Below, piece after piece: positions 6,854-47,733 of a stretch of DNA of 64,000 bases. The stretch comes from Pseudomonas aeruginosa PAO1 (GTDB lineage Bacteria > Pseudomonadota > Gammaproteobacteria > Pseudomonadales > Pseudomonadaceae), in the NCBI RefSeq assembly GCF_000006765.1, contig NC_002516.2; one strand, given 5' to 3'. Numbering within the stretch: position 1 is the first letter of the stretch; each line of letters begins with the position of its first letter. The position numbers were made by a program, and so were the translations under genes. The notes beneath the pieces are model-generated. The model was given only the letters and a program-made list of their open reading frames with translations. It was not told where the DNA came from and made no database searches.

Positions 6854-7001
6854 GCCTTGCGGCACCCCTGCGCCGAAGCGCGCGGACGGAGATCACTGGG
6901 AATGGATACTGACGAAAAACGCCGGAGCTGATCCGGCGCGAAGCGCCCATGGTAAAGCATCCGCGGCGAGCTGACGAGCGGTCAGTTCGCCCGGCCTCGC
7001 T

Positions 7002-16305: not shown

Positions 16306-16440
16306 AAAAAACGCAAACTGATGCGCTGACGGCTCTATCGTGCGGAACTTGCTATGAGTTGGCGGGGAATTTCAAGTCACCGGCATCGATAGCCACTATC
16401 AGCCCAAAGCATTTTTCCCCAGCGGAGCGGCGTGAGATCG

Positions 16441-16519
16441 TAGCGGCGTCGGGAGAACCCCAAGTCCCCGACGCTCCTTTGAAGACCATCGCCCTCCCCC
16501 CGCAGATGGTCTTTTTTTT
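16441..16519 (+). ncRNA. Candidate sRNA, sibling 1 (two hairpins with C-rich loops)
   Basis: GCGTCGGG[AGAACCCCAAGTC]CCCGACGC, then AAGACCATC[GCCCTCCCCCCGCA]GATGGTCTT plus T-run. Confidence 0.6.
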
Positions 16520-16653
16520 GCCCGCGATTCGGCCGTGCCCCGACCGGCTGGCCCAGGACATGGAACATTCCGTTACGTCCCCCACTGAACTTTTCACCCG
16601 TGCCTCGGTGTCTTACCCTGCTCGCGTTACCACGTAAGGAGAACCTCAAGGAC

Positions 16654-17124
16654 ATGAAAGCACTACTGATCGCCGCCGGCGTTGCCGCTCTTTCCAGCAC
16701 CGCCATGGCCGCCAAACTGGATGAAAAGGTTCCCTACCCGAAGGCAGATGCCGGCTTCACCCGCCAGGTCATCCACCTGCCGAAACAGGACGCGGAAGAC
16801 GCATTCAAGGTCGAGATCATCGCCGGCAAGACCCTCGAGGCCGACTGCAACCAGCAGCGCCTGGGCGGCGAGCTGGAAGAACACACCCTGGAAGGCTGGG
16901 GCTACTCCTACTACCGCCTGGACAAGGTCAGCGGGCCGATGAGCACGATGATGGCCTGCCCCGGCCAGAAGAAGGAGCAGCGCTTCATCCCGGTGGTCGG
17001 CGAAGGCTTCCTGCTGTGCTACAACAGCAAGCTGCCGATCGTGGTCTATGCGCCGAAGGACGTGGAGGTCCGCTATCGGATCTGGTCGGCGTCCGAAAAG
17101 GTCGAGAAAGCGGTCAGCGAATAA
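16654..17124 (+). CDS. eco: Ecotin serine protease inhibitor
   Basis: Signal peptide; [36 protein letters not shown]. Confidence 0.97.
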
Positions 17125-17135
17125 ACGCCGCGCAT

Positions 17136-17163
17136 GAAAAAGCCGCCCACGGGCGGCTTTTTT
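17136..17163. terminator. Bidirectional terminator
   Basis: AAAAAGCCGCCC-AC-GGGCGGCTTTTT. Confidence 0.8.
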
Positions 17164-17176
17164 CGTTGCGCCTGCT

Positions 17177-17578
17177 TCAGCCCGGCACCAGGCCGATGTT
17201 CAGGCCGGAGTCCACGGTGATCCGGTAATGCGTGGTCTGCCCGTTCTGCACATGCACCACCTGCTTGGGCGCCTCGCCGCGGCAGATCCCATCGCCCTGC
17301 ACGGATACCACCCGCAGCCCCGCCGGAAGACGGAAACGCGCGCTCTCGCCGGCCTGGATCTCGGCGGCCAGGCGGCTATCGATGATCAAGCGGGTATTGC
17401 AGACGCTGCCGAGGAACTCGCGGTCCCGGGAAACCACCAGGAAGGCGTCGCCGTCGTCACGGAACTGATAGTTGTACAAACGCTCCTTCGGTACCTGGTC
17501 CGTCTCGTCGAGCGAGGGCGTCGATGTCGAACAACCCGCCAGCAAGACGGTCCCCAGTAGCATCCCCAAAATCCGCAT
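17177..17578 (-). CDS. Putative lipoprotein
   Basis: MRILGMLLGTVLLAGC lipobox at ATG 17578 (ORF track extends to 17638). Confidence 0.75.
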   Translation of the reverse strand: MRILGMLLGTVLLAGCSTSTPSLDETDQVPKERLYNYQFRDDGDAFLVVSRDREFLGSVCNTRLIIDSRLAAEIQAGESARFRLPAGLRVVSVQGDGICRGEAPKQVVHVQNGQTTHYRITVDSGLNIGLVPG

Positions 17579-17749
17579 AGTGACCCCAATCCGTTCATCG
17601 AAATGCCGCACCCCATCCTCGCCGGGGCAGACCTTCATGGCTTGCGGTCGTACTTCCTCCCTGAACCGGCACCACAGCGCACGTCCGTCTAAGGTAGGCG
17701 ATTTGCCCCGGCCAAGGCGAGCGCGAATGGCGCTGAAGAAAAAAAATCC

Positions 17750-18193
17750 TCAGACGGAGGCCGCCTCGCCGGCCGGCAACGCGGAAGTCGGGAGGCCGAA
17801 CAGGCGATCGAAGGCCCAGTTGAAGAGGAAGGTGTAGCACGGGATCAGGACGATCAGCGCCAGGTCCAGCCAGAACGCCTCCAGCAGGGAAATCCCCATC
17901 CACCAGGCGATCAGCGGGATCAGGTAGACCACCAGGGTCAGCTGGAAGCCGATGGCGTGCGCCACCCGCCGCGCAATGCTGCGTCCGCGCACGGCCTGGC
18001 GCCGCTCCCAGAACTCGAACAGGCAGTTGTAGATGAAGTTCCAGGTCACCGCGACGGTGGTGATCACCACCGCCAGGGGGCCGGTGGTAGTGGGCGTGGA
18101 ACCGGCGAGCAGGGCCAGCCCCAGGGTCGAGATACTCATCCCGATCAATTCGTAGGCGGTCACGTAGACCAATTTGCGCTTGATGCCTTGCAC
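17750..18193 (-). CDS. PACE (AceI-family) efflux transporter
   Basis: RKLVYVTAYE, WNFIYNCLFE, RVAHAIGFQ, YTFLFNWAFD; GTG 18193. Confidence 0.9.
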   Translation of the reverse strand: MQGIKRKLVYVTAYELIGMSISTLGLALLAGSTPTTTGPLAVVITTVAVTWNFIYNCLFEFWERRQAVRGRSIARRVAHAIGFQLTLVVYLIPLIAWWMGISLLEAFWLDLALIVLIPCYTFLFNWAFDRLFGLPTSALPAGEAASV

Positions 18194-18259
18194 GTGGACC
18201 TCTCGGGCGTGATAGCGGAAAGGCGGGCAAGGTTGGATCAATTTTCTTGACAGAAAAAG

Positions 18260-18282
18260 TCAGCAGCTTTCAGATCTGCTGA
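18260..18282. promoter_or_regulatory. Inverted repeat in the PACE/LysR divergent promoter (probable LysR site)
   Basis: TCAGCAG-N9-CTGCTGA. Confidence 0.5.
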
Positions 18283-18295
18283 TAGGAGAATTGCC

Positions 18296-19183
18296 ATGAA
18301 CTTTTCCAGCGATACCATCGAGCTGTTCCTCGCCGTCCTCGACCGCGGCTCCTTTTCCGGCGCCGCCCGTGCCTTGGGTCGAGTGCCTTCGGCGGTGAGC
18401 ATGGGCATCGCCAACCTCGAGGCGGAGCTGGGTTTCGCCCTTTTCGAGCGAACCCACCGCGAAGCCCGTCCTACGGCGCTGGCCAGGGCCCTGGCACCGC
18501 AAGCGCGGATGATCGCCGAGCAGCTCGCCCAGTTGCAGGTGCATGCGCTGGAACTCTCCCAGGGATTGGAAAGCCGCCTGTCGCTCGGCGTGGTTGCGGA
18601 CATCGACAGCGGGCGACTGTTCGGTGCCCTCCGCACCCTTTCCGAGCGCTACCCGCTGCTCGATGTCGAGGTGCTCAGCGCGGCGCAGGACGATGCCCTC
18701 GCCCTGCTCCATGGCGGCCGGATCAGCCTGTGCTTCGGATTCGCCGGCATCAGCGTGAACCCGCAGGAGCGCTTCCAGTATGTCGGCGCGGAATCGCTGG
18801 TCGCGACCATCTCGCCGCGCCATCCCGCCCTGCAGAAGCCGGGGCAGGCGCTGTACCTGGAAGAGCTGGTGAACGTGCGGCAGATCCTGGTCGCCAGTTG
18901 CGACCTGCCGTTGGCCGACACCCGTCCGCTGATTGCCGGCGCCTGCTGGCGCACCGACAGCCTGGGCACGGCGCTGGAAATGGTCGAGGCGGGGATCGGC
19001 TGGGGCAATTTCCCGTTGTCCCGGGTCGCGCCGCTGCTGGCAACGGGAAGGCTGGTACGCCTGGACTTCAGGAATACCAAGAACGAGCTGAAACTGCCTG
19101 TCCACGCTATCTGGCTGAAAAACCAGCCATTGCGCAAGGCCGCCCAGGAACTGGTTGGCATGCTGGCCACCCGTCCCGATTGA
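18296..19183 (+). CDS. LysR-family regulator
   Basis: FLAVLDRGSFSGAARALGRVPSAVS...LEAELGFALFER HTH. Confidence 0.95.
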   Translation: MNFSSDTIELFLAVLDRGSFSGAARALGRVPSAVSMGIANLEAELGFALFERTHREARPTALARALAPQARMIAEQLAQLQVHALELSQGLESRLSLGVVADIDSGRLFGALRTLSERYPLLDVEVLSAAQDDALALLHGGRISLCFGFAGISVNPQERFQYVGAESLVATISPRHPALQKPGQALYLEELVNVRQILVASCDLPLADTRPLIAGACWRTDSLGTALEMVEAGIGWGNFPLSRVAPLLATGRLVRLDFRNTKNELKLPVHAIWLKNQPLRKAAQELVGMLATRPD

Positions 19184-19393
19184 AGCGTTATGCAATGCAC
19201 TTCACAGAAAAAACGAGACCCGTCACGCGAATCGCCGCACACGCCGGCTCCCCGGCCTCCAGTACTTGATCTCGATCAAGCGCAGCGCCAGCCATAGGCA
19301 GATGATCGTTCTGCGGCCATCCTCCGTTTGCGGCCGTAGAGCTCCGGACACTTCATGCTAGGGGGGCCGGAGCTCTTCCCTCTTCCTCGCGGC

Positions 19394-19708
19394 TCAGGAA
19401 CAGGTCCTGGCCGCATCGATGAAGGCCCCGCGGGTGACCCAGGGCTGCTGATCATGGATTCGCACCAGGCTGCCACCCCTCGCCGGCTGCACCTCCAGCC
19501 ACTGACCGGCGTCCGCCAGGCGATAGCCGCGGCCTTCCTCCACCAGCGCCACGCCCGGCGCCTGGCGTTGCCACTTGGGCAAGACGCACATCGCGTAATC
19601 GTAGGGAGCCTTGCTGGTGCTGGCGGCCAGTGCCGGGGCGTTCGAAGCGGGAGGCGAGGCACAGGCGGACAGGGCCAGGGCGGCGAATACAGCAATAAGA
19701 ATCTTCAT
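19394..19708 (-). CDS. Small lipoprotein
   Basis: MKILIAVFAALALSAC lipobox; GAGGGA SD. Confidence 0.8.
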   Translation of the reverse strand: MKILIAVFAALALSACASPPASNAPALAASTSKAPYDYAMCVLPKWQRQAPGVALVEEGRGYRLADAGQWLEVQPARGGSLVRIHDQQPWVTRGAFIDAARTCS

Positions 19709-20072
19709 GTCACGTCCCTCTTTGTCGATCCGTTCACGATTCGACGGTATCACCGCCCAAAGCGAGAACTGCAGCGACTTCGCGGCATGGTACTTATCGA
19801 TAAGGTTGATATTGCAGGCGCATGACGAAGCGATCCGGCAACGCCCGATTCAGAGCCTATGGAAGGGGCTTTCCTTGCACTTTGGTTATTAGCAAATGAC
19901 TCGAAGCTTTCTTGGATCGAACAATGTTCTGGTATTGTTGCGCCGCCAACGGGAGAAACAAGAAACCAGAACCGCCACGCACGGTAAATGGGACAAATGA
20001 CTCCCGTGCACTTCGAACCTTGCGCTTCCTTCAATTTCAGCGCACATCAAGCCAACAACCAGGAACAATAAG

Positions 20073-21350
20073 ATGTTGAAGAAAAGGATTTGCCTGCTGG
20101 CACTGGGCATCGCGACTGCAAGCCAGGCGATGGCCAATGACCAAGAAGCAGCAAAGGGGTTTGTCGAGGACAGCCACCTCGATCTGTTCTTCCGCAATGG
20201 CTACATCAGCCGTGACTACAAACATGGCCGGCAGGACAAGGCCGAATGGGGCCAGGCCGCCACTGCCACCTTCACCTCCGGCTTCACCCAGGGGACGGTG
20301 GGCGTCGGTGTCGACGCGTTCGGCTTGTACGCGGTACGCCTGGACGGCGGCAAGGGTCGTAGCGGCGCCGCCGGTATCGACTTCTTCAAGCAGGGCGACA
20401 GCGGCTCCGCGGCGGACGATCTGTCCAAGGGCGGCGCGGCGGTGAAGTTCCGCATCTCCAACACCGTGCTCAAGTACGGCGACCAGATGCCCAGCCTGCC
20501 GGTGCTCAGCTACGACAACTCGCGCCTGCTCCCGGAAAGCTACAGCGGCACCCTGATCACCTCCAAGGAGATCGAGGGCCTGGAGCTGAACGCCGGTCGC
20601 TTCACCGCGGAATCCCGCAAGAGCGCCGAAGGGCGCGACAGCGGCGGCCTGAAGAGCATCAACGTGTTCGGCGGCAAGTACGCCTTCACCGATCACTTCA
20701 ACGCCTCGCTGTACGCTTCCGACGTCGAGGACGTACTGAAGAAGCAGTACATCAACCTGAACTACACCATCCCGCTGCAGGCCGACCAGTCGCTGAACTT
20801 CGACTTCAACGGCTATCGCACCAAGCTGGACAGCGACTTCGCCGACCAGAACTTCAACGGTAACCGCGACAACAAGATCTGGAGCCTGGCGGCGTCCTAC
20901 ACCATCGACGCCCACACCTTCATGATCGCCCACCAGCGCAACACGGGCGACACCGGCTACAACTACGGCTGGTACCAGAACGCCGGCGGCATCGGCGACG
21001 GCGGCACCACCATCTGGCTGGCCAACTCCTACTGGTCGGACTTCAACGCCGAGGACGAGCGTTCCTGGCAGGTCAGCTACGCCCTGGACTTCGCCAAGTA
21101 CGGCGTGCCCGGCCTGACCTACCGCGTAGCCTACGTGCGCGGCGACAACATCAAGACCGCCGAGACCAGCAACGGCAAGGAGCGCGAGATCTTCAACCAG
21201 GTCCAGTACGTGGTGCAGAGCGGTCCGGCCAAGGACCTCACCCTGCGTCTGCGCAGCTCGTTCCTGCGTGTCTCCAACGACGCTCGCTCGTACAACGACG
21301 ACGGCAACGAAATCCGTGCCTTCGTCGAGTACCCGTTCAGCGTGTTCTGA
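20073..21350 (+). CDS. oprQ: OprD-family porin OprQ
   Basis: GFVEDSHLDL, FTSGFTQGTVGVGVDA, RLLPESY; C-terminal Phe; syntenic position. Confidence 0.85.
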   Translation: MLKKRICLLALGIATASQAMANDQEAAKGFVEDSHLDLFFRNGYISRDYKHGRQDKAEWGQAATATFTSGFTQGTVGVGVDAFGLYAVRLDGGKGRSGAAGIDFFKQGDSGSAADDLSKGGAAVKFRISNTVLKYGDQMPSLPVLSYDNSRLLPESYSGTLITSKEIEGLELNAGRFTAESRKSAEGRDSGGLKSINVFGGKYAFTDHFNASLYASDVEDVLKKQYINLNYTIPLQADQSLNFDFNGYRTKLDSDFADQNFNGNRDNKIWSLAASYTIDAHTFMIAHQRNTGDTGYNYGWYQNAGGIGDGGTTIWLANSYWSDFNAEDERSWQVSYALDFAKYGVPGLTYRVAYVRGDNIKTAETSNGKEREIFNQVQYVVQSGPAKDLTLRLRSSFLRVSNDARSYNDDGNEIRAFVEYPFSVF

Positions 21351-21370
21351 TCGAACCTGCGAACGCGACG

Positions 21371-21404
21371 AGAACCCCGGGCCAGTCCCGGGGTTTTCTT
21401 TTTT
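21371..21404 (+). terminator. Terminator after oprQ
   Basis: AACCCCGGG-N5-CCCGGGGTT plus T-run. Confidence 0.85.
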
Positions 21405-21506
21405 GCGTTTCGTGCGCCAGTTCAACCTTATCGGGTAGAGCCGTACAGCTTCGGAAAGCCAGTGATAGCATTCGCTCTCGCTTGCCATTGCTTATCGATA
21501 TCGACA

Positions 21507-21878
21507 ATGCCGTTCCGGAAACACCTTCTCCTCCCCCTCCTCGGTCTTGCCCTGCTGCTCGGCGGTTGCGGCCCTAGCGTCAGCTACTCCTACATTCCGC
21601 CGACCAGCGATGCCGGCCTGCACTGCGTGAGCCAGTGCAATGCCGAGAAGCGCCAGTGCAAGACCCTCAGCAAGCTGCAGCAGCGCCAGGACGAGGCGCT
21701 CTACCAGGCGCAGAGCACGGCCTACAACTACTGCATGCAGAACAGCGACAAGAAGAAGCGCAAGTCCTGCCCCTACCCGCAGCGCAACTTCGATTTCGGC
21801 GACGACTGCCAGGAAGAGTACCGCAGTTGCTACCAGTCCTGCGGCGGCACCATCCGCCGCATCGTCCACCAGGACTGA
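21507..21878 (+). CDS. Cys-rich lipoprotein
   Basis: LLLGGC lipobox; eight further Cys. Confidence 0.75.
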   Translation: MPFRKHLLLPLLGLALLLGGCGPSVSYSYIPPTSDAGLHCVSQCNAEKRQCKTLSKLQQRQDEALYQAQSTAYNYCMQNSDKKKRKSCPYPQRNFDFGDDCQEEYRSCYQSCGGTIRRIVHQD

Positions 21879-21920
21879 GGCGCGACGTCCGGCAGGCATC
21901 CCGGACGTGCGGCAATACCG

Positions 21921-22265
21921 TCAGGCGAAGACGAAGTACTTGCGCACCGTCTCCACTACCTCCCAGGTACCACGCAGGCCCGGCTCGATGACGAACACGT
22001 CGCCCGCCCTCAGGTGCACCGGTTGCTCGCCTTCCGGGGTGATGATGCAGTAGCCGTCGAGGAAGTGGCAGAACTCCCAGCGTTCGTAGTTCACCTCCCA
22101 CTTGCCCGGCGTGCAGATCCAGGTGCCCATCAGCTTGCTGCCGTCCGCCGAGGCGTATGCGTTGAGGTTGACGGTATGCGGATCGCCGTCGATCCGCTTC
22201 CACTTGGTGGCGTCCAGCACGGGTACGGGACAGGTATCGCGCAGTACGGTGATGAAATCTGACAT
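21921..22265 (-). CDS. Cupin domain protein (DUF861/cupin_3-like)
   Basis: GTWICTPGKW, EFCHFLDG, AGDVFVIEPG, GTWEV..TVRK. Confidence 0.92.
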   Translation of the reverse strand: MSDFITVLRDTCPVPVLDATKWKRIDGDPHTVNLNAYASADGSKLMGTWICTPGKWEVNYERWEFCHFLDGYCIITPEGEQPVHLRAGDVFVIEPGLRGTWEVVETVRKYFVFA

Positions 22266-22376
22266 GGTCGCTCCAGGAAGGCAGTGGATGAATGCCTCAC
22301 CATAGGGCCACGCGCGGGGCGCCGGTTGTCTGGGTTCGACATCCGCCTAGCTGAAAGCGCTAGGCAGCCCGTGCGC

Positions 22377-22586
22377 TCAGCGACGCCTGCCATTCAGCGC
22401 TGCCAGCAGGTCGCAGACCATGATCAGCAGCAGCATGGGTACGGCGAACGGAAAGAATGCCAGCGCCGCGTATTCGTAGGCCTGGCCCGTCCACCACAGG
22501 CAAAGGCTGGCGACCGCCACGAGCAGGAAGCTGGCGGCGACGATGAACTTGCACAAGCGCGAGGCGAATCTGAGCGTATCGTCCAC
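22377..22586 (-). CDS. 69-aa two-TM membrane protein (GTG 22586)
   Basis: AAGGAG SD; two hydrophobic helices. Confidence 0.65.
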   Translation of the reverse strand: MDDTLRFASRLCKFIVAASFLLVAVASLCLWWTGQAYEYAALAFFPFAVPMLLLIMVCDLLAALNGRRR

Positions 22587-22746
22587 GACGAATCTCCTTC
22601 GGCGACTCCCCCGCAGTCTGCCGAAACCGCTCTGTCCCGGCGGTGACGCAAGAATGACGATTCGGACAGAATTGTTACGCCTGCCGCAAAACTTCATTCC
22701 ACTTTGTTAGCTGGCTAATCAAATTCCCCCTTGATATCGTCTTTTT

Positions 22747-22827
22747 CGCCAGATCCCCAAGGCCTGGCAAATGTCCCTTGTACAGGCCATTACCAACCCT
22801 CCCCCCGCTTGGTAATGGCCTTTTTTT
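22747..22827 (+). ncRNA. Candidate sRNA, sibling 2
   Basis: Extended -10 TGaTATCGT at 22732-22740; 5' hairpin loop ATCCCCAAGGC; AGGCCATTACCAA[CCCTCCCCCCGC]TTGGTAATGGCCT plus T-run. Confidence 0.65.
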
Positions 22828-22855
22828 CCCTTCTGCCGTAGTCCATGGAGATCGC

Positions 22856-23044
22856 ATGCCACGCATTGCCCTGGTCCTGGGTGTGCTGCTGGTCAGCGCC
22901 TGCGCACAGCCTGTCACGCCGGACTCGATAGTCGAGGAATCGTTTTCCCGCAGCGCCAGCGAACGCCAGCTGGAAGAGCTGAACCGCCAGGGCCTTCCCT
23001 ACGAGCAGTACCGGCTGCGCCGCCAGCGCATTCTTGGCCGCTGA
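22856..23044 (+). CDS. 62-aa lipoprotein
   Basis: GGAG SD; MPRIALVLGVLLVSAC lipobox. Confidence 0.75.
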   Translation: MPRIALVLGVLLVSACAQPVTPDSIVEESFSRSASERQLEELNRQGLPYEQYRLRRQRILGR

Positions 23045-23058
23045 TCCCGGCACCGCGC

Positions 23059-23268
23059 CTAGCGCTTCTTCGGCACCACCGCCCGCACCGCCTCGCAGAC
23101 GACCAGCCCGACCATCAGCGGGATCAGCAGCGGCAGGATCGACATCGAGAGGTTTTCCGCTCCCGAGCTGAGGAGAAACGGAAACTGGCTGAGGAAGGCG
23201 ACCATCGCCAGGCTGAGCAGGATCAGCAGGCCGTAGAGGCATGACGCCAATTTCAGAGCTTTTTCCAT
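23059..23268 (-). CDS. 69-aa two-TM membrane protein
   Basis: Two hydrophobic helices, basic C-terminus. Confidence 0.65.
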   Translation of the reverse strand: MEKALKLASCLYGLLILLSLAMVAFLSQFPFLLSSGAENLSMSILPLLIPLMVGLVVCEAVRAVVPKKR

Positions 23269-23598
23269 GACCGGGTAGAAAGTGAAGGATTCGGAAGAAA
23301 ATCTACCCGCCCCGCTCCCCCGGTATGGCGAGAAGCAAGATTTTTTCAGATTCGGGTGCCCCGAAAAGACGCGAACCCGACCGACCGATCACCCCTCCAT
23401 GCCCGTCGCGACAACCCGATCGGTCGGGTCCGGACTTGCAACATACCGCCGTGCCGATATCACGTCGCCTACCGGAACAAGGAGTTGTTCTTTTCGACGA
23501 ACGTCCTCGCCTCCCGCTATCGCCCGCCCATCGCGACCTCGTATGCTCGCCGGGCGATGCCTCATGCCAGCAACCCCCACCCACAAGGGAGCAACACG

Positions 23599-24294
23599 AT
23601 GAGCAACCTGCCTGCAATCATCCTGGTCCACGGCTTCTGGGGCGGCGCCGCCCACTGGAGCAAGGTCATTCTCGAACTGAAACGCCTCGGCCACGACAAC
23701 CTGCATGCCGTCGAACTACCGTTGACCTCGCTGGCGGACGATGCCGAGCGGACGCGCAAGATGATCGCGCAGCAACAGGGGCCGGTCCTGCTGGTGGGAC
23801 ACTCCTATGGCGGCGCGGTGATCACCGAGGCCGGCAACCAGCCGAATGTGGTCGGGCTGGTCTATATCGCCGCCTTCGCCCCCGACAGCGGCGAAAGTCC
23901 CGGTGGCATCACCCAGGAGCACTTGCCCCTGGCCGCAGCGAACCTGGCGACGGACAGCGATGGCTATCTCTGGGTGAAGGCGGACAGGTTCCACGAAAGC
24001 TTCTGCCAGGATCTCGCTGCGGACGAAGGGCTGGTCATGGGCATCACCCAGAAGGCTCCGCTGGCCAGCACTTTCGGCGATGCCATCGGCAGCCCGGCCT
24101 GGAAGAGCAAGCCCTCCTGGTACCAGATTTCCAGCGCCGATCGCATGATTGCGCCGGAGAACCAGGAGCGGATGGCCGCGCGGATCGCACCGAGGAAGAT
24201 CGTCACCCTCGATGCCAGCCACGCGTCACTGGCCTCGCGAGCGAAGGAAGTAGCGGCGCTGATCGACGAGGCCGCCGTGGCCACCGCCCACTAG
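23599..24294 (+). CDS. Alpha/beta hydrolase (family 6-like)
   Basis: AGGGAG SD; ILVHGFWG, GHSYGG, DASHASL. Confidence 0.9.
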   Translation: MSNLPAIILVHGFWGGAAHWSKVILELKRLGHDNLHAVELPLTSLADDAERTRKMIAQQQGPVLLVGHSYGGAVITEAGNQPNVVGLVYIAAFAPDSGESPGGITQEHLPLAAANLATDSDGYLWVKADRFHESFCQDLAADEGLVMGITQKAPLASTFGDAIGSPAWKSKPSWYQISSADRMIAPENQERMAARIAPRKIVTLDASHASLASRAKEVAALIDEAAVATAH

Positions 24295-24341
24295 CGCCGC
24301 GCAGGACGCGGCAGCAGGCCTGGCCTGCTGCCGCGGCGGGC

Positions 24342-25241
24342 TCAGAGGCCGAGGGCGGACAGGTCGAGGCGGCCGTCGGCCATGGGCGGACACCAGAAGT
24401 AGCTGCCGCTGATCGGCCGGGTGAAACGGAACAGGCCATCGAGCACCCCGTCTTCCACGCCGATCATCCGTAGCCACTGGACCTCGAAGGCCTCGAACGA
24501 GCGGCCGAAGGCGGCGAACAACAGCCCCGCGCGGTGCTCGTCGGACCAGGGCGCGCCGCGCCGCAGGAGGAACGCGGCGGGCTCGAAGCTTTCCTGCTCG
24601 GTGCGCTTGACGTGGGCGTAGGCCGGCGCGTCTTCCAGTTCTTCATCGTCGGACTTGCGGCGGCCGATGATGTTGTCCATCTCCTCGCCGGGGATCGCCT
24701 GCATCCGGTCGAAGTCATGCAGCCACTGCTGGACAGCAACGAAACTGCCGCCATCCAGGCCCGCACCGCGCCCGGAGACCAGCGCGGCTTCGAGCGCCGC
24801 ATCGCCCTTGGGGTTCTCGGTGCCGTCCTTGTAGCCGGACAGGTCGCGGTCCTCGCCGTAGAGGAACGCATCCACCGCGCCGGTCCGCTGGAAGGCCGGC
24901 GCCAGCGACCGTTCCAGCGCGTGCGAGCGCAGCGTCACCTCGCCGCGATCCTCGCCGCGCAGCCAGCACCACAGCGCGGAGGGCGTGGACGGCAGGTCGA
25001 TGCCGGGCGCGGCGAGCACCGGATAGTCCTTCATGCCCTCGACGGTCTTGCCGAGGCTGAGCATCAGCGAATGGCCGATACCCACCACCAGCTGGTAACC
25101 ATCGGTGGCCGCGGCCAGGCTGGCCAAGGTCGCGGCCACCTGCTCGGGTTGGGAAATGCTGAAAAACAGGTAGCGACCCACCACCGGAATCGGGGTGAGA
25201 ATGCCTGGCTGAGCCGCGCTCATGTTGCCTCCATCTATCAT
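24342..25241 (-). CDS. DyP-type peroxidase
   Basis: GYKDGTENP (GxxDG), IIGRRKSD, AHVKRT, LLRRGAPW. Confidence 0.93.
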   Translation of the reverse strand: MIDGGNMSAAQPGILTPIPVVGRYLFFSISQPEQVAATLASLAAATDGYQLVVGIGHSLMLSLGKTVEGMKDYPVLAAPGIDLPSTPSALWCWLRGEDRGEVTLRSHALERSLAPAFQRTGAVDAFLYGEDRDLSGYKDGTENPKGDAALEAALVSGRGAGLDGGSFVAVQQWLHDFDRMQAIPGEEMDNIIGRRKSDDEELEDAPAYAHVKRTEQESFEPAAFLLRRGAPWSDEHRAGLLFAAFGRSFEAFEVQWLRMIGVEDGVLDGLFRFTRPISGSYFWCPPMADGRLDLSALGL

Positions 25242-25428
25242 CAGGCCGTGCGCCGCTCGTGGCGATGCACCTTCGATCTCGTTCTGGTTCGAGCAATGCT
25301 CGGTTTCGGAGCGCAGCGGCGGGCGACGCCAAGCGAAGCGGCTCCGAAATACCCGCGCATCCTAAACCGGTGCAACGCCAGAGACCACTCGAAGACGAGG
25401 GAAAAGCGCGAAGTCGGACCTGCGTCGC

Positions 25429-25524
25429 TCAGAACTCCATCGGCATGAGACCGACCACCAGGCCGGCGACGGCAAGGGCAAACACCAGCAGGGCCTTGGC
25501 GAGTTCGAGATGATGGGCGTTCAT
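25429..25524 (-). CDS. 31-aa hydrophobic peptide (candidate)
   Basis: MNAHHLELAKALLVFALAVAGLVVGLMPMEF; AGGT about 7 nt upstream; lies in the TetR-DyP gap. Confidence 0.45.
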   Translation of the reverse strand: MNAHHLELAKALLVFALAVAGLVVGLMPMEF

Positions 25525-25582
25525 GGGCTTACCTGTCGGAGGGAAAGCCTGACGCTAGACGCCGAACATTGCAGTTGTGCAA

Positions 25583-26164
25583 TCAGTCCCGGTCCGCTTG
25601 CGGCGAAACCGCTCCGCTCGCCGAAAGCAGGCCCAGCGCATGCTCCAGCGCCGCATCCAGGACCTTGTCGCGCGCCACCTCGCTCGCCTGGGCACGCGCG
25701 AGAAGCACCGCGCCGACCGACAGGCAGGTGAGCACCCAGGCCCGGTTCTCGTCGCCCATCAGTTCGGCCAGCCGCCGTTGCCGCTGTTCCAGGGCGCGTT
25801 CGAAGGTTTCCCGCACCTCGGGCCCTGCCCGGCCCACCTCGGCGGCCAGCGCCGGAATCGGGCAGCCCATGTCGGCATGCTGCGCATGACCGCGACTGAG
25901 GTAGAGACGGGTGGCGCCGGCCAGTTGCTCCAGGCTGTCCAGCGGAAAGGCATCGTGCTGGGCGCTCAGCTCGCGCTGCAGGATCGCTTCGAGCAACTCC
26001 GCCTTGCTGGAGAATTGCGAGTAGAACGCCCCGGTGGTAAGACCAGCCGCCTTCATCAAGGTGTCCAGGCCGGTGCTGGCGAAGCCCTGGCGCTTCACCA
26101 GCGGAGCGGCCTTGCTCAACAGCAGGGCGCGGGTGGCCTGTTTCTGTTCCGGTTTGTAGCGCAT
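25583..26164 (-). CDS. TetR-family regulator
   Basis: GFASTGLDTLMKAAGLTTGAFYSQFSSKAEL HTH. Confidence 0.95.
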   Translation of the reverse strand: MRYKPEQKQATRALLLSKAAPLVKRQGFASTGLDTLMKAAGLTTGAFYSQFSSKAELLEAILQRELSAQHDAFPLDSLEQLAGATRLYLSRGHAQHADMGCPIPALAAEVGRAGPEVRETFERALEQRQRRLAELMGDENRAWVLTCLSVGAVLLARAQASEVARDKVLDAALEHALGLLSASGAVSPQADRD

Positions 26165-26206
26165 GCCGACTATCCGTTGGTTGGGGAGACGATGTCGTCA
26201 CATTGG

Positions 26207-26234
26207 ATAATGATCTTTATATAACGCTCGTTAT
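26207..26234. promoter_or_regulatory. Tandem palindromic operators between divergent TetR and ECH genes
   Basis: ATAATGATCTTTAT and ATAACGCTCGTTAT (ATAA-N6-TTAT twice). Confidence 0.55.
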
Positions 26235-26251
26235 CCAATGAGGAAGCCGCA

Positions 26252-27220
26252 ATGACTCTAGCACCGCGACACCTGCGCATAGAACAACGAGGACGCGTCC
26301 TGCAAGTCCTGCTCGACAATCCCCCGGCGAACTTCCTCACCACGGCGGTGATGCAGGAGCTGGCCGACCTGCTGGAAGACCTTGAGCAACGCCAGGACAT
26401 CGGCGCCGTCATCCTTTCCGGAGCGGCGGACGGGGTCTTCCTGACCCACTTCGACGTCGACGAGATCGAGCGCGCCGTCGCCCCCATCACCTTTTCCATG
26501 CCGGCCTGGCTGACACGCCTGCTGCTGGAAAGCGAAAGCCTCCTGCGCCACTTGCCTGGGGCGAGGAAGCTGCTGCGGCGCACCCTGCTGGCAGGCGTCG
26601 CCGACATGAACCTGTTCCATGAGGTCACCGCGCACATGCGCCGCATGGACAAGGTGTTCATCGCCGCGATCAACGGCCTGGCCCTGGGTGGCGGCTGCGA
26701 GCTGGCGCTGGCCTGCGACCTGCGCCTGATGGCCGAGGACGACCAAGTGGAACGCTTCCTCGGCCAGCCGGAAGTACTCATCGGCCTGATACCGGGAGGC
26801 GGCGGCACCCAGATGCTGGCGCGCAGCCTGGGCGTAGCCAGGGCCCTGGAGCTGTGCCTGGAAGGGCAACTGCTGGAGCCGCGCCAGGCCCTTGCGCTGG
26901 GCCTGGTCAACGGGCTGGCGCCAGCGGAGGAGCTACTGGAAGCCGCCGACGCGCTGGCGCAACGCCTGTCCCGGCGCTCACCGCAAGCGGTGCGCCTGAT
27001 CAAGCGTTCGATCTACCAGGCGGCTTCCCGCGACTGGACGGAGGGCATGGCCAGCGAAAAGGCCGGCTTCCTCTCCGCCGCCTCCCAGGGCAATACCCGC
27101 CGCGCCATGCGCGAATACATCGAACGGGTGCGCACCATCACCCGGGAAGAGCGCCCTTTCCGCCGTGCGGATTTTGACGACCTGACCGAAGGCAACGCCA
27201 TCGACATGGCCTACAGGTGA
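26252..27220 (+). CDS. Enoyl-CoA hydratase/isomerase family protein
   Basis: AINGLALGGGCELALACD, GQPEVLIGLIPGGGGTQ. Confidence 0.93.
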   Translation: MTLAPRHLRIEQRGRVLQVLLDNPPANFLTTAVMQELADLLEDLEQRQDIGAVILSGAADGVFLTHFDVDEIERAVAPITFSMPAWLTRLLLESESLLRHLPGARKLLRRTLLAGVADMNLFHEVTAHMRRMDKVFIAAINGLALGGGCELALACDLRLMAEDDQVERFLGQPEVLIGLIPGGGGTQMLARSLGVARALELCLEGQLLEPRQALALGLVNGLAPAEELLEAADALAQRLSRRSPQAVRLIKRSIYQAASRDWTEGMASEKAGFLSAASQGNTRRAMREYIERVRTITREERPFRRADFDDLTEGNAIDMAYR

Positions 27221-27708
27221 TCTGCATGACTGCCTCCCCTTCCCCGGTTTCCGCCACGCCTTGGCTGACCCTGAGCATTCGCCTGATGGCCGGCGGCTTC
27301 CTGCTGTTCTTCGGCCTGGCCCTGGCCACGCTGCTCCTGCGGCTCGACCAGTCGCTGCTCGACTCCGACGCCGGGCGCCTGCTGCTCCGCCTGGTTCGCT
27401 GGGGCGACCAGCAAGGCGGCGGACAGCACTATGAGCTGATGATCTCGACGATCTACCTGGTCTGGGGCGCATTCCTCTGGCGCGCCGCCAGCCAGCCCTT
27501 CCGCCACCGGCTGTTTATCGACTTCACCGTGGCGGCCAATGCCGCGCACTTCGGCCTGATGTTCCTGCAGGGACTGTTGATGCCCGGCGAACACATCCAC
27601 CTGGCCGGCGATGTCCTGCTGGGCTGGGCCTCGCTGCTGCCGCTGATGCTGTTCTGGATACCGCAACGCAAGCGGGCAGCCCCTTCGCTCGCCGTCGAGC
27701 GGAAGTGA
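27217..27708 (+). CDS. Four-TM membrane protein
   Basis: GTGA overlap with ECH; hydrophobic segments. Confidence 0.8.
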   Translation: MICMTASPSPVSATPWLTLSIRLMAGGFLLFFGLALATLLLRLDQSLLDSDAGRLLLRLVRWGDQQGGGQHYELMISTIYLVWGAFLWRAASQPFRHRLFIDFTVAANAAHFGLMFLQGLLMPGEHIHLAGDVLLGWASLLPLMLFWIPQRKRAAPSLAVERK

Positions 27709-27733
27709 CGACAGTGGAACGGCCCCCAAAGGG

Positions 27734-27753
27734 GCCTAGCAGTTCGAACAGGC
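27734..27753 (+). promoter_or_regulatory. las/rhl (lux-type) box upstream of sRNA sibling 3
   Basis: GCCTAGCAGTTCGAACAGGC fits CT-N12-AG; -35 TTGATG at 27759-64, -10 TATGCT at 27781-86. Confidence 0.55.
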
Positions 27754-27792
27754 TCCTCTTGATGCCGTTGCGGACTGGCCTATGCTCACGGT

Positions 27793-27850
27793 GTGTGCGA
27801 ACCCCAAGGGTATTTCCCGACCAGCTCCCCCGCGGTCGGGATTTTTTTTT
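27793..27850 (+). ncRNA. Candidate sRNA, sibling 3
   Basis: GAACCCCAAG motif; TCCCGACC[AGCTCCCCCGC]GGTCGGGA plus T9. Confidence 0.65.
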
Positions 27851-27859
27851 GCCTGTCGC

Positions 27860-28270
27860 TCAGCGCTTCGGGTCGAAGGGCGAATAGCCCCGCCGGCGCA
27901 GGCTCGCCAGGGGCGCGAACAGCGGCTCCGGCAGATCGGCCCAATCGAACCAGGCCCAGCCGTCGCACTTGTCCGGCTCCATGAGGCGCGCCTCGGCATC
28001 CTCCGCGCAACCGGCCAGGATGAACGCGGTGAGGTAGTGGCGCCCCTCGAAGACGTCATTGCTGAACGGGCCGTGGCGCAGTTCGCTCAGCGCCAGGTCG
28101 GTCTCTTCCAGGGCTTCGCGCAGGGCGCAGTCCTCCACCGCCTCGCCGAACTCGAGATGGCCGCCGGGCGCCGACCAGCAGCCAGCGCCATGACTGCCCT
28201 TGCGGCGCCCCAGCAACACCTTGCCGTCCCGCAAGATCAGGACGCCCACGCCTACCTGCGGTGCCGGCAT
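27860..28270 (-). CDS. Nudix hydrolase
   Basis: GGHLEFGEAVEDCALREALEETDL Nudix box. Confidence 0.95.
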   Translation of the reverse strand: MPAPQVGVGVLILRDGKVLLGRRKGSHGAGCWSAPGGHLEFGEAVEDCALREALEETDLALSELRHGPFSNDVFEGRHYLTAFILAGCAEDAEARLMEPDKCDGWAWFDWADLPEPLFAPLASLRRRGYSPFDPKR

Positions 28271-28291
28271 CGTCGTACTCCTGCTTCGGGA

Positions 28292-29071
28292 TCAGAGATG
28301 GAGCGTACCGCTCATGTACAACGCCGCCTTGCCGGAGATGACCACCCGCTCGCCGCGCACGTCGCATTCCAGGCGCCCCTTGCGCGCCCCGCCCTGCTCG
28401 GCGCTCAGCCGGGTCTTGCCCAGGCGCTGCGCCCAGTACGGCGCCAGGGAGGTATGCGCGGAGCCGGTCACCGGGTCTTCGTTGACGCCGACGTTGGGCC
28501 CGAACCAGCGCGAGACGAAATCGAAGCGCTGGCTGCGCGCGGTCACCGCCACCCCGCGGCACGGCAAGCCCTTCAGCCGGGCGAAGTCAGGCGCCAGGGC
28601 GGCGATCGTCTTTTCGTCGTCGACCACCACGAGGTAATCGTCGGTCTTCAGCACTTCCGCCTCGGCAATACCCAGCGCCTCCAGCAGTCCGTCCGGTGTC
28701 GCGCAAGGCTCCGGACGCTTGGCCGGGAAGTCCATCGCCAGCGAGTCGCCCTCGCGCCGCACGCTCAGCTCACCGCTACGGGTAGCGAAACGCAGTACCG
28801 GGGAAGCGTCGTCGAGCTTGTGGATCAGTACCCAGGCCGTCGCCAGGGTCGCATGACCGCACAGGTCCACCTCGACCTGCGGCGTGAACCAGCGCAATCG
28901 ATAGTCGCCGTCGCGGCCGACGACAAAGGCGGTTTCCGAAAGATTGTTCTCTTCCGCGATGGCCTGCAGGCGCTCGTCGTCCAGCCAGGCATCGAGGGGG
29001 CAGACCGCCGCCGGATTGCCCTGGAAGGGACTGTCGGCGAATGCGTCTACCTGGAAGATCGTCAGTTCCAT
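28292..29071 (-). CDS. PhzF-family isomerase/epimerase
   Basis: QVDAF...GNPAAV, NLSETAF, EVDLCGHATLA, EDPVTGSAH. Confidence 0.95.
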   Translation of the reverse strand: MELTIFQVDAFADSPFQGNPAAVCPLDAWLDDERLQAIAEENNLSETAFVVGRDGDYRLRWFTPQVEVDLCGHATLATAWVLIHKLDDASPVLRFATRSGELSVRREGDSLAMDFPAKRPEPCATPDGLLEALGIAEAEVLKTDDYLVVVDDEKTIAALAPDFARLKGLPCRGVAVTARSQRFDFVSRWFGPNVGVNEDPVTGSAHTSLAPYWAQRLGKTRLSAEQGGARKGRLECDVRGERVVISGKAALYMSGTLHL

Positions 29072-29157
29072 GTTCCGGACTCCTGTATCGATGGGCTGCG
29101 CACCTTAGCAGCCGGACCGAGACCAGGACAATGCCGCGCCCCGCGCAGGCGCCTCGC

Positions 29158-29424
29158 TCAGATCTGACGGATATCCAGCAGCGCCCAGACCTGGTAACCC
29201 TGGCGCTTGGCTTCCTTCTCCGCTTCCAGTTGCGCGGTGACCTTGCTGATGGAGCGCGAGCGATGTTCGAAACGCAGCGGCAATCCCGCCCCGCCCTTGC
29301 GCACGCTCAGTTCGACGATGGTGTAGCGGACCGGCTGGCTGGCCTCGGTCCGGACCTTTTTCGGTCGCGTTTCGGCAAGGCCCAGCGCCTTGCGCATCTG
29401 TTCTTCAGAGTAGATTTCCTGCAC
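29158..29424 (-). CDS. Small hypothetical protein (start uncertain: GTG 29424 or upstream to 29454)
   Basis: QEIYSEEQMRKALGL...RFEHRSRSISKVTAQLEAEKEAKRQGY. Confidence 0.6.
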   Translation of the reverse strand: MQEIYSEEQMRKALGLAETRPKKVRTEASQPVRYTIVELSVRKGGAGLPLRFEHRSRSISKVTAQLEAEKEAKRQGYQVWALLDIRQI

Positions 29425-29525
29425 GCATTCACCCAGATTGAATAAAACCCGCAAATCCTATTGGTTCGCGACCCCACTTGCCAGGATAGTCGGCGAAGCG
29501 GGTCACACATCGACGCGAAAATCGC

Positions 29526-29545
29526 GCCTACCAGATCCGGCAGCT
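29526..29545 (+). promoter_or_regulatory. las/rhl box upstream of sRNA sibling 4
   Basis: GCCTACCAGATCCGGCAGCT fits CT-N12-AG; -10 TAAGCT at 29567-72 centres the box near -43. Confidence 0.65.
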
Positions 29546-29578
29546 TCATCGAAACCGCCGCCGACATAAGCTGTGGGC

Positions 29579-29633
29579 GCTGTACATCCCTGGATCCTTT
29601 CCCGGCCTGCTCCACGCGGCCGGGATTTTTTTT
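29579..29633 (+). ncRNA. Candidate sRNA, sibling 4
   Basis: TCCCGGCC[TGCTCCACGC]GGCCGGGA plus T8; near copy of the sibling 3 terminator with a compensatory base change. Confidence 0.65.
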
Positions 29634-33449: not shown

Positions 33450-33526
33450 TGGTAGGCACGATTGGATTCGAACCAACGACCCCCACCATGTCAAGGTGGT
33501 GCTCTAACCAACTGAGCTACGTGCCT
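33450..33526 (-). tRNA. tRNA-Val(GAC)
   Basis: AGGCACGTAGCTCAGTTGGTTAGAGC-ACCACC-TTGACAT-GGTGG...GGTTCGAATCC...CCTACCA; 77 nt with CCA. Confidence 0.98.
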
Positions 33527-47480: not shown

Positions 47481-47640
47481 TTGCCGCACAGCGAAACAGG
47501 GCTAGCCTTATCAATGTGACTTTCTCCTATGGTGGTCACCAAAGCCCCGGGGGCCGCTCATCCCTCCGGGGCTTTCCCCCCGCCTGCTGCCTCTCCCCTC
47601 CTTGATACAGCAGCCCATCGCAGTTCAACGAGGAAACCCG
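47481..47640 (+). promoter_or_regulatory. sigma70-like promoter and structured leader with three hairpins
   Basis: TTGCCG-16-TAGCCT; stems at 47516-39, 47541-75 and 47584-613; pyrimidine-rich loops containing CTCC. Confidence 0.5.
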
Positions 47641-47733
47641 ATGAAACTCAGCATTGTCGCCCTGGGCCTGTTGTCCATGGCAGGGGTGCTCATCTGCACC
47701 TATCTGATCCTGAAATCGCTCAGCGCCATCTGA
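47641..47733 (+). CDS. 30-aa hydrophobic peptide (candidate type I toxin-like small protein)
   Basis: GAGGA SD; MKLSIVALGLLSMAGVLICTYLILKSLSAI*. Confidence 0.55.
   Translation: MKLSIVALGLLSMAGVLICTYLILKSLSAI

Follow-up and report, generated by a model that had tools for sequence, protein, structure and literature searches.

Within 13 kb of the PA2754-PA2771 region, the 64,000-nt stretch of the Pseudomonas aeruginosa PAO1 genome analysed here (the window) contains four short RNA units, U1 to U4, all encoded on the plus strand. With moderate confidence, these units are read as a lineage-specific cluster of Hfq-associated base-pairing small RNAs (sRNAs), in which an oversized terminator loop would present an anti-Shine-Dalgarno (SD) motif. 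Sequence comparison resolves them clearly into two paralogue pairs, U1/U2 and U3/U4, and makes their membership in one family plausible but not proven. The sRNA catalogue of P. aeruginosa runs to well over a hundred entries, few of them with a known role, and three of the four units have been listed since 2012 without a function. U1, U3 and U4 are thus already known as anonymous catalogue entries; U2, the paralogue pairing, the common C-rich-loop design and the interpretation of an RhlR site as the promoter of an sRNA seem not to have been reported before in the literature searched.

Architecture of the four units

The initial annotation had placed four plus-strand units at 16441-16519, 22747-22827, 27793-27850 and 29579-29633, and all of them were recovered on reading the sequence (Table 1). 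In agreement with its description, a hairpin scan finds at the end of each unit a strong terminator hairpin with an oversized C-rich loop bearing CTCC, followed by a run of seven to nine T. Stems measure 8-13 bp, loops 10-14 nt and tails T7-T9 across U1-U4; U1 and U2 comprise two hairpins each, U3 and U4 one. The loops are exposed as predicted: the C-run has an unpaired probability of 1.00 in the structural ensembles of U1-U3, and the CUCCAC of the U4 loop is open too. Furthermore, the motif CCCCAAG, which had been noticed upstream of the loops of U1-U3, is indeed common to these three units and extends to GA(A/T)CCCCAAG, while the U1 and U2 loops have an exact 12-mer (CCCTCCCCCCGC) in common. 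The claim that the stems differ from unit to unit applies to U1 and U2, whose stems are wholly different, but fails for U3 and U4, whose stems are identical save for one compensatory change from A-T to G-C.

Similar loops were looked for among the ordinary terminators of the window. The other clean terminators in the hairpin scan have loops of 3-5 nt, none of them with CTCC, and no further terminator-like hairpin with a CTCC loop was found in the 64 kb; a scan of the window for any C-rich-loop hairpin likewise gave no additional example with a T-run. A terminator scan restricted to loops of at most 8 nt misses U1-U4 altogether. CCCCAAG occurs six times in the window, counting both strands, and three of these occurrences precede the C-rich loops of U1-U3 by 25-45 nt. 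The composite pattern CCCCAAG-N12-42-CTCCCCC-N6-18-T6, itself derived from these units, gives three matches versus none in 100 shuffles.

The proposal that all four units form one family is borne out in part. Local alignment scores place U3 with U4 (z = 14.8, over the las/rhl box, the promoter and the RNA) and U1 with U2 (z = 7.6, from the -10 region to the T-run), eight control terminators remaining at background; the similarity between the pairs is weak (z = 3.9 for U1-U4, 3.5 for U1-U3, 2.4 for U2-U3 and -0.2 for U2-U4). What links the pairs is the element GAACCCCAAG in U1 and U3, the loop core CTCCCCC(C)GC, a T-run followed by GCC, and their physical clustering. When a covariance model (R1) was built from U1 and its orthologue, U2 was the best non-self match (18.2 bits, E about 0.01). 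A MAFFT alignment of the four units was structurally inconsistent and was rejected as the basis of a four-member covariance model.

Table 1. Positions of the units and of associated features in the window (TSS, transcription start site; ORF, open reading frame; aa, amino acids)
Feature	Position	Strand	Remarks
U1 (SPA0038, inside PA14sr_063)	16445..16519	+	fold z = -4.1
U1, possible 5' extension (long form)	16347..16444	+	start approximate, inferred from the PA14sr_063 5' end via P13 calibration
U1 hairpin 1	16445-16475	+	loop ACCCCAAG
U1 terminator	16482-16514	+	5' arm AAGACCATC, loop gccctccccccgca, 3' arm GATGGTCTT, T8; as RNA, loop GCCCUCCCCCCGCA at 16491-16504, then U8
U2	22748..22827	+	fold z = -4.9; also 5' leader of the lipoprotein ORF
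U2 hairpin 1	22748-22768	+	CCCCAAG in loop
U2 terminator	22784-22821	+	5' arm AGGCCATTACCAA, loop ccctccccccgc, 3' arm TTGGTAATGGCCT, T7; as RNA, loop CCCUCCCCCCGC at 22797-22808, then U7
las/rhl-box-like palindrome	27734..27753	+	CT-N12-AG, gcCTagcagttcgaacAGgc; upstream of U3, centre about -50
U3 (SPA0116, short form of AS2779)	27794..27850	+	single-stranded 5' part bears GAACCCCAAG
U3 terminator	27815-27841	+	5' arm TCCCGACC, loop agctcccccgc, 3' arm GGTCGGGA, T9; as RNA, loop AGCUCCCCCGC at 27823-27833, then U9
RhlR site	29526..29546	+	gcCTaccagatccggcAGctt; centre about -43.5 from the U4 start
U4 (SPA0097 = IGR2780)	29579..29633	+	sequence read, hairpin scan
U4 terminator	29600-29625	+	5' arm TCCCGGCC, loop tgctccacgc, 3' arm GGCCGGGA, T8; as RNA, loop UGCUCCACGC at 29608-29617, then U8
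TSS, PA14 2451226	22748	+	U2 hairpin 1, first base; the Wurtzel authors attribute it to the novel lipoprotein ORF
Antisense RNA TSS, PA14 2446191	27794	+	U3 start
TSS, PA14 2444391	29579	+	U4 start; assigned by the Wurtzel authors to PA14_28250
ORF, 62-aa putative lipoprotein (PA14_NovelOrf_010)	22856..23044	+	ATG 29 nt past the U2 T-run; Wurtzel transcription unit (TU) 1508, novel ORF table
PA2763	22377-22586	-	69-aa two-helix membrane protein gene beside U2
ORF, 69-aa two-helix membrane protein	23059-23268	-	unannotated in PAO1, beside U2; weakly similar to PA2763 (BLASTP E = 9e-5)
PA2763 5' leader segment	22598..22625	-	candidate target; UUCGGCA-GACUGCGGGGGAGU-CGCCGAA, abutting an AGGAG SD sequence
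Other clean terminators	17140, 21370, 35007, 60603	+	loops of 3-5 nt
Other clean terminators	32223, 17159, 6939	-	loops of 3-5 nt

Transcription, promoters and Hfq binding

Published data confirm the suspicion that single members had already been catalogued (three of the four: U1 = SPA0038, U3 = SPA0116, U4 = SPA0097) and, through Northern probes, PA14 TSSs and in vitro Hfq binding, that the units are small transcripts rather than mere terminators. The probes of Ferrara et al. 2012 for SPA0038, SPA0116 and SPA0097 fall precisely on the terminators of U1, U3 and U4 and gave Northern bands of about 70, 50 and 20 nt, respectively. The U1 probe (AAAGACCATCTGCGGGGG; band ~70 nt) is the reverse complement of 16499-16516, and the U3 probe (AAATCCCGACCGCGGGG; band ~50 nt) and the U4 probe (AATCCCGGCCGCGTGAG) sit on their respective terminators. 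U1 is also covered by PA14sr_063 (Wurtzel et al. 2012), a 222-nt transcript described as 'has terminator' and P. aeruginosa specific, with 379/511 reads per kilobase per million (RPKM), which maps to about 16350-16572. For U2, U3 and U4, TSSs from differential RNA sequencing of PA14 coincide with the first bases of the units. U2 is absent from the Ferrara sRNA list and from the Wurtzel sRNA table.

AS2779, the longer form of the U3 transcript, contains a canonical terminator midway and has a read-through form antisense to PA2769, in keeping with the window, where a transcript reading through U3 would be antisense to that gene. For IGR2780 (U4), one TSS, a sigma-70 promoter and a typical terminator are on record. 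An ORF on the same strand follows three of the four units directly: U1 precedes eco, U2 the lipoprotein ORF and U4, at a distance of 96 nt, the diguanylate cyclase gene PA2771; U3 instead faces a convergent gene. Since the authors of the PA14 map attributed the TSSs of U2 and U4 to the ORFs that follow, these two units are also terminated 5' leaders, with a TSS shared with the ORF and an intrinsic terminator within the leader, a layout that U3 does not have and that U1 perhaps does. For the possible long form of U1, a TATCGT -10-like hexamer is present at 16334-16339, upstream of the segment that was folded (16347-16521); in a check for sigma-22 dependence, GGAACTT was found at 16346-16352, with no TCTGA-like -10 element at 16-17 nt from it.

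The promoters differ between the pairs, as the initial annotation had supposed for the members. U1 and U2 share a TGAKATCGT -10 region (TGAGATCGT in U1, TGATATCGT in U2), and U3 and U4 carry las/rhl boxes and promoters of the sigma-70 type. On the 3' side of the U3 box, TTGATG (27759-27764), which the box abuts, and TATGCT (27781-27786) are separated by a 16-nt spacer, and the 3' end of SPA0116 appears in the Term-seq list with a 28.6-fold induction by acyl-homoserine lactone (AHL). Upstream of U4, the RhlR motif AAGCTGCCGGATCTGGTAGGC reported from chromatin immunoprecipitation sequencing (ChIP-seq) at PA14 2444398 is the reverse complement of 29526-29546. Neither gene flanking this ChIP-seq site responds to RhlR, and the expression of PA14_28250 is RhlR-independent; consequently, the U4 sRNA is the obvious product of the site. 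Furthermore, Hfq binds IGR2780 (U4; Kd below 150 nM) and AS2779 (long U3) in vitro, with two cooperative binding sites on each RNA.

PA14 positions were transferred to the window by means of ORFs of identical length (sum of the two coordinates 2,473,970-2,473,985, varying by interval). The Term-seq 3' ends of the plus-strand SPA0116 (27850) and SPA0080 (47582) fit hairpin ends only if the PAO1 position equals the window position plus 3,100,075, and the 100-nt bins of Ferrara are better accommodated at plus 3,100,000. Because of this disagreement of ~75 nt with the Thomason Term-seq data on the plus strand, the calibration was based on the PA14 ORF coordinates. Either offset places the 3' end of the minus-strand SPA0079 on a U-tract, at 23367 or at 23292.

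Conservation and distribution

In a divergent contig labelled P. aeruginosa (L001; PA2764 90% identical), the U1 and U2 bodies carry no substitutions and their immediate flanks have diverged; U1 differs only by one 1-nt indel in a stem and one in a loop. In P. paraeruginosa ATCC 9027 (L115), U3 and U4 are likewise free of substitutions and differ only by shorter T-runs. Conservation around the P. paraeruginosa U3 begins exactly at the first base of the las/rhl box, the sequence upstream being wholly diverged. RNA bodies that stay unchanged while their immediate flanks diverge suggest selection on the units.

A metagenome scan for the U1/U2 loop together with CCCCAAG, a pattern blind to U3/U4-type copies, returned 12 matches: 10 were orthologues of U1 or U2, and the other two came from junk contigs. 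Only the U2 copy came up on a P. paraeruginosa-like contig of 4.99 Mb, although a U1 resembling that of L001 should fit the pattern as well. Neither unit nor synteny was found at the eco loci of P. nitroreducens, P. citronellolis, P. chlororaphis and P. putida or at the PA2764 locus of P. nitroreducens, and a plasmid search gave no copy of U1 or U3. When genome contigs were scanned with the composite pattern, the matches listed were mostly chance occurrences and sX13-type RNAs. Within the reach of the searches, P. aeruginosa and P. paraeruginosa are the only species in which the units were found.

Comparison with known RNA families

At Rfam gathering thresholds, the whole window contains only P13 (6919-6994, minus strand) and a tRNA (33453-33526, minus strand), with zero matches on U1-U4. 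A relaxed search (E up to 10) gives matches on the units that are mostly C-rich-loop sRNAs, all far below gathering. U1 is matched by ar14 (RF02344; 22.9 bits, gathering 58.8) and, over the whole model, by Pseudomon-1/ErsA (RF01719; 22.4 bits, E = 1, gathering 50); anti-hemB (RF02837; gathering 49.5) is found on U3 (18.8 bits) and U4 (18.5 bits), and NsiR1 (gathering 39) on the same two units (20.0 and 22.8 bits), with an alignment that consists of the terminator hairpin and U tail. U2-U4 are not among the ErsA matches at E up to 10, and the sX13 model gives no match on any unit at this threshold, genuine sX13 loci scoring 80-141 bits in the same tool. Membership in ErsA, sX13, anti-hemB and ar14 was rejected, since none of them reaches its gathering threshold.

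ErsA resembles U1 in being a P. aeruginosa RNA with two hairpins whose loops are C-rich (Rfam consensus: CCCCGCCCUAG and CCCCUCCCCAUAC), a UUGAA spacer, and UUUUUUUUGCC after the terminator; it is also Hfq-dependent, and U4 and long U3 bind Hfq in vitro. Unlike the units, it has a single-stranded 5' region of ~33 nt and is located at PA5492/engB, in the polA-engB interval. ErsA depends on sigma-22. In plain alignment, the units match the ErsA consensus or sX13 hardly better than control terminators do (z = 3.7 for U1 against the ErsA consensus, 3.6 for one ordinary terminator). The characterised pairings of ErsA reportedly involve its 5' region, not its loops.

The sX13 RNA of Xanthomonadaceae (RF02232) uses apical C-rich loops (4C/5C motifs) to act on G-rich motifs close to the start of translation; like U1 and U2, it carries CUCCCCC in its terminator loop, and CCCCAAG closes the loop of its penultimate hairpin. 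These two motifs were the query pattern, so the likeness is one of RNA design and no independent evidence of homology. In contrast to the units, sX13 is 115 nt long, always lies downstream of polA and is Hfq-independent, and no polA was found near the units. It also has three 4C/5C stem-loops, compared with the two hairpins of U1/U2 and the one of U3/U4.

The ar14/CcsR family is multi-copy and often clustered. The anti-hemB and ar14 'cuckoo' RNAs resemble the units in being multi-copy and in exposing CCUCC-type motifs in hairpin loops; they belong to other phyla or classes, and the likeness is restricted to the loop motif and the terminator. Staphylococcus aureus RNAIII and RsaE (RoxS) bind G-rich SD regions through exposed C-rich loops, and RNAIII is controlled by agr quorum sensing as U3 and U4 are by las/rhl. 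This parallel, which the sX13 authors had drawn, is one of analogy only, the staphylococcal RNAs being unrelated in sequence, Gram-positive and Hfq-independent. RhlS, derived from the rhlI 5' untranslated region, is a quorum-sensing-induced short RNA generated by leader termination and shares its layout with U2 and U4. It has no sequence relation to them, and its downstream gene is regulated by quorum sensing, whereas PA14_28250 is not RhlR-dependent. The literature searched contains no description of the C-rich-loop design in Pseudomonas, although for Staphylococcus and Xanthomonas this design is established.

As a separate observation, sX13-like RNAs with C-rich loops follow polA directly, and on its strand, in several orders of Gammaproteobacteria; their penultimate loop has CCCCAAG and their terminator loop CUCCCCC. 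They are present in Microbulbifer (L036, 6745-6799; also L046, L047, L048 and L064), in Salinisphaera and Salinisphaeraceae (L006, 4871-4926; L029), as two tandem copies that match anti-hemB in Solimonas (L009, 5703-5791 and 5912-6004), and in further gammaproteobacterial metagenome-assembled genomes (L032, L106). The Rfam sX13 model stays below gathering on these polA-linked RNAs, and the sX13 paper describes the gene as exclusive to Xanthomonadaceae. Together with the catalogue entry for ErsA, which lists PA5492/engB with the note 'Spot42', these loci suggest that a C-rich-loop sRNA linked to polA may be much more ancient and more widespread than any single Rfam family. ErsA and sX13 are not mentioned together in the literature searched.

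Proposed mode of action and alternatives

In the proposed mechanism, the cluster would have arisen by local duplication, giving the pairs U1/U2 and U3/U4. Each RNA of 55-80 nt (U1 perhaps also in a ~170 nt form) displays an unpaired CUCC(C)n in its terminator loop, followed by a long U tail, with CCCCAAG as a second exposed motif in U1-U3. Hfq bound to the U tail would help the C-rich loops to pair with GGAG or GGGG at or near ribosome-binding sites, and such pairing would alter the translation or stability of the target mRNA, by analogy with RNAIII/RsaE, sX13 and ErsA-type RNAs. Driven by LasR/RhlR-type boxes, U3 and U4 would form a post-transcriptional arm of quorum sensing, U1 and U2 being under promoters of another type.

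Several findings weigh against this mechanism. No target is known for any unit, and over-expression of IGR2780 or AS2779 left the minimum inhibitory concentration (MIC) unchanged. For U2, a TSS and a terminator were found and no experimental evidence of a discrete RNA; moreover, the assignment of the U2 and U4 TSSs to downstream ORFs raises the possibility that their short RNAs arise by attenuation. The two pairs are weakly linked, with cross-pair z values of at most 3.9, and the U1 model gives U4 13.1 and U3 10.1 bits, compared with 13.1 for an ordinary terminator (21341-21407). Cross-species covariation was not seen, because the units are invariant in the sole lineage that carries them. The genome-contig matches listed (at least 120) lie outside P. 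aeruginosa, so that copy number in this species is only partly covered. Finally, the duplex energies calculated for the PA2763 leader, the candidate target discussed below, are no better than those of shuffles.

The most serious alternative, although judged unlikely, is that the units act mainly in cis, as attenuator leaders (U1 for eco, U2 for the lipoprotein ORF, U4 for PA2771) or, in the case of U3, as a cis-antisense RNA to PA2769, the short RNAs being by-products. The C-rich loop could then sequester a downstream SD sequence in the read-through transcript or serve a termination-control factor. The position of three units directly upstream of same-strand ORFs fits this, as do the assignment of the TSSs at 22748 and 29579 to those ORFs by Wurtzel et al., the antisense orientation of the long AS2779 form and the precedent of RhlS in P. 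aeruginosa; at U2, where the T-run ends 29 nt before the lipoprotein ATG, there is little room for a separate promoter. At U4, on the other hand, RhlR binds upstream and PA14_28250 is nevertheless RhlR-independent, which points to little read-through and to the sRNA as the main product. U3 has no ORF to gate, and Hfq binds both U4 and long U3. Moreover, identical loop motifs are kept in front of unrelated genes, which argues for a shared partner in trans. The two roles can coexist, as RhlS illustrates by analogy.

That the units are simply the intrinsic terminators of neighbouring genes, alike by chance or composition, is hardly credible any longer and has largely been refuted. Each does end in a canonical hairpin with a T-run, the G+C-rich genome makes C-rich loops possible, and the U1 covariance model scores an ordinary terminator as highly as U3/U4. 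Yet loops of 10-14 nt stand against 3-5 nt in the other clean terminators, the composite motif is not reproduced in shuffles, the U1 and U2 loops share their exact 12-mer, the U3/U4 alignment reaches through the promoter and the las/rhl box, and the units have their own TSSs, Northern bands and quorum-sensing induction. A role as sponges or decoys that titrate G-rich RNAs or Hfq is quite improbable. One candidate partner is SPA0079, a quorum-sensing-induced RNA encoded 0.5 kb away from U2, to which Hfq and RsmA/N bind and which has GGAGGGG in its loop (AUGGAGGGG); CCCUCC is present in the U1 and U2 loops, the 5' end of U3, GCGAACCC, and the 3' part of SPA0079, GGGUUCGC, are complementary, and IGR2780 and AS2779 each have two cooperative Hfq sites. 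These complementarities are, however, short (6-10 bp) and were found post hoc, and no experiment links the units to SPA0079.

Returning to base-pairing in trans, local candidate targets were considered. GGGGGAG occurs nine times in the window versus 16 expected, and three of the nine sites are the antisense of units. Two of the remaining six lie in the 5' regions of 69-aa membrane protein genes, PA2763 and the ORF at 23059-23268 (minus strand), and GCGGGGGAG in the PA2763 leader is the exact complement of the U3 loop. The PA2763 leader hairpin is not part of the minimum free energy (MFE) fold, and duplex energies of the loops against the window are swamped by the G+C-rich background. The PA2763 leader is thus a lead only, suggested by its complementarity. 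The site belonging to the ORF at 23059-23268 has not been kept in the divergent lineage. A G-rich-loop hairpin (23340-23292, minus strand), seemingly complementary to the U3 loop, was rejected, as its GGGGGAG is not conserved in that lineage either. A more ambitious version, in which the four RNAs would be one family expanded from an ancient polA-adjacent C-rich-loop sRNA (represented by sX13, ErsA and the look-alikes of Microbulbifer, Salinisphaera and Solimonas), rewired with two members under quorum sensing, and using loop-loop or loop-SD pairing to repress jointly a set of mRNAs whose ribosome-binding sites are G-rich, among them those of nearby small membrane protein genes such as PA2763, is regarded as doubtful.

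If the units do act as base-pairing RNAs, paralogue pairs with one exposed anti-SD motif would offer a testable mechanism, and the possible redundancy of the members implies that single deletions or over-expression might show nothing. U3 and U4 could account for indirect post-transcriptional effects of quorum sensing and for at least one 'orphan' RhlR site. The advance is an incremental one, since both this class of mechanism and the existence of sibling sRNAs had been established before.

Gene context and further observations

The PAO1 gene order across the region runs from ecotin (PA2755) through an OprD-family porin (PA2760), an enoyl-CoA hydratase (PA2767), a Nudix hydrolase (PA2769) and the PhzF-like PA2770 to the GGDEF protein PA2771, and the flanking-gene labels in published lists agree with this PA2754-PA2771 map. 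The P13 element (RF01665) at 6919-6994 on the minus strand scores 105 bits and is labelled 'part of a T-box riboswitch' by Wurtzel et al.

The gap between PA2763 and PA2764, which is intergenic in the PAO1 annotation, contains two extra small ORFs, for the 62-aa lipoprotein and a 69-aa membrane protein. The lipoprotein ORF is intact in the divergent contig L001, with eight synonymous and nine non-synonymous codon differences. The true PA2764 is ~231 aa long and starts near 23599, not 23356. The TSSs of PA2763 (22766, minus strand) and U2 (22748, plus strand) define head-to-head transcripts with an overlap of ~19 nt. In addition, PA14sr_062 (280 nt, minus strand, 22843-22564) spans the entire U2 in antisense, so that the G-rich antisense of the U2 loop may be transcribed. 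SPA0079 (~23430-23364, minus strand; Northern probe at 23390-23405) originates from the same 1,011-nt 'intergenic' region as U2. Its loop is SD-like and complementary to the CCCUCC of the U1 and U2 loops, which makes it a possible partner of the C-rich-loop RNAs.

Perfect palindromes lie upstream of U1 (GATAG-CCA-CTATC, 16389-16401) and U2 (TTAGC-TG-GCTAA, 22707-22718), both on the plus strand. Both are kept in the divergent lineage while the adjoining spacer varies, and they may be operator sites for regulators.

Outside the cluster, SPA0080 (47541-47600, plus strand) is a further AHL-induced sRNA (2.9-fold), located just upstream of a small ORF starting at 47642. It consists of a hairpin (AAAGCCCCGG/CCGGGGCTTT) followed, in place of a T-run, by a C-rich tract (CCCCCCGCC...CUCUCCCCUCC); this tail is reminiscent of the unit loops, but it stands outside a loop context.

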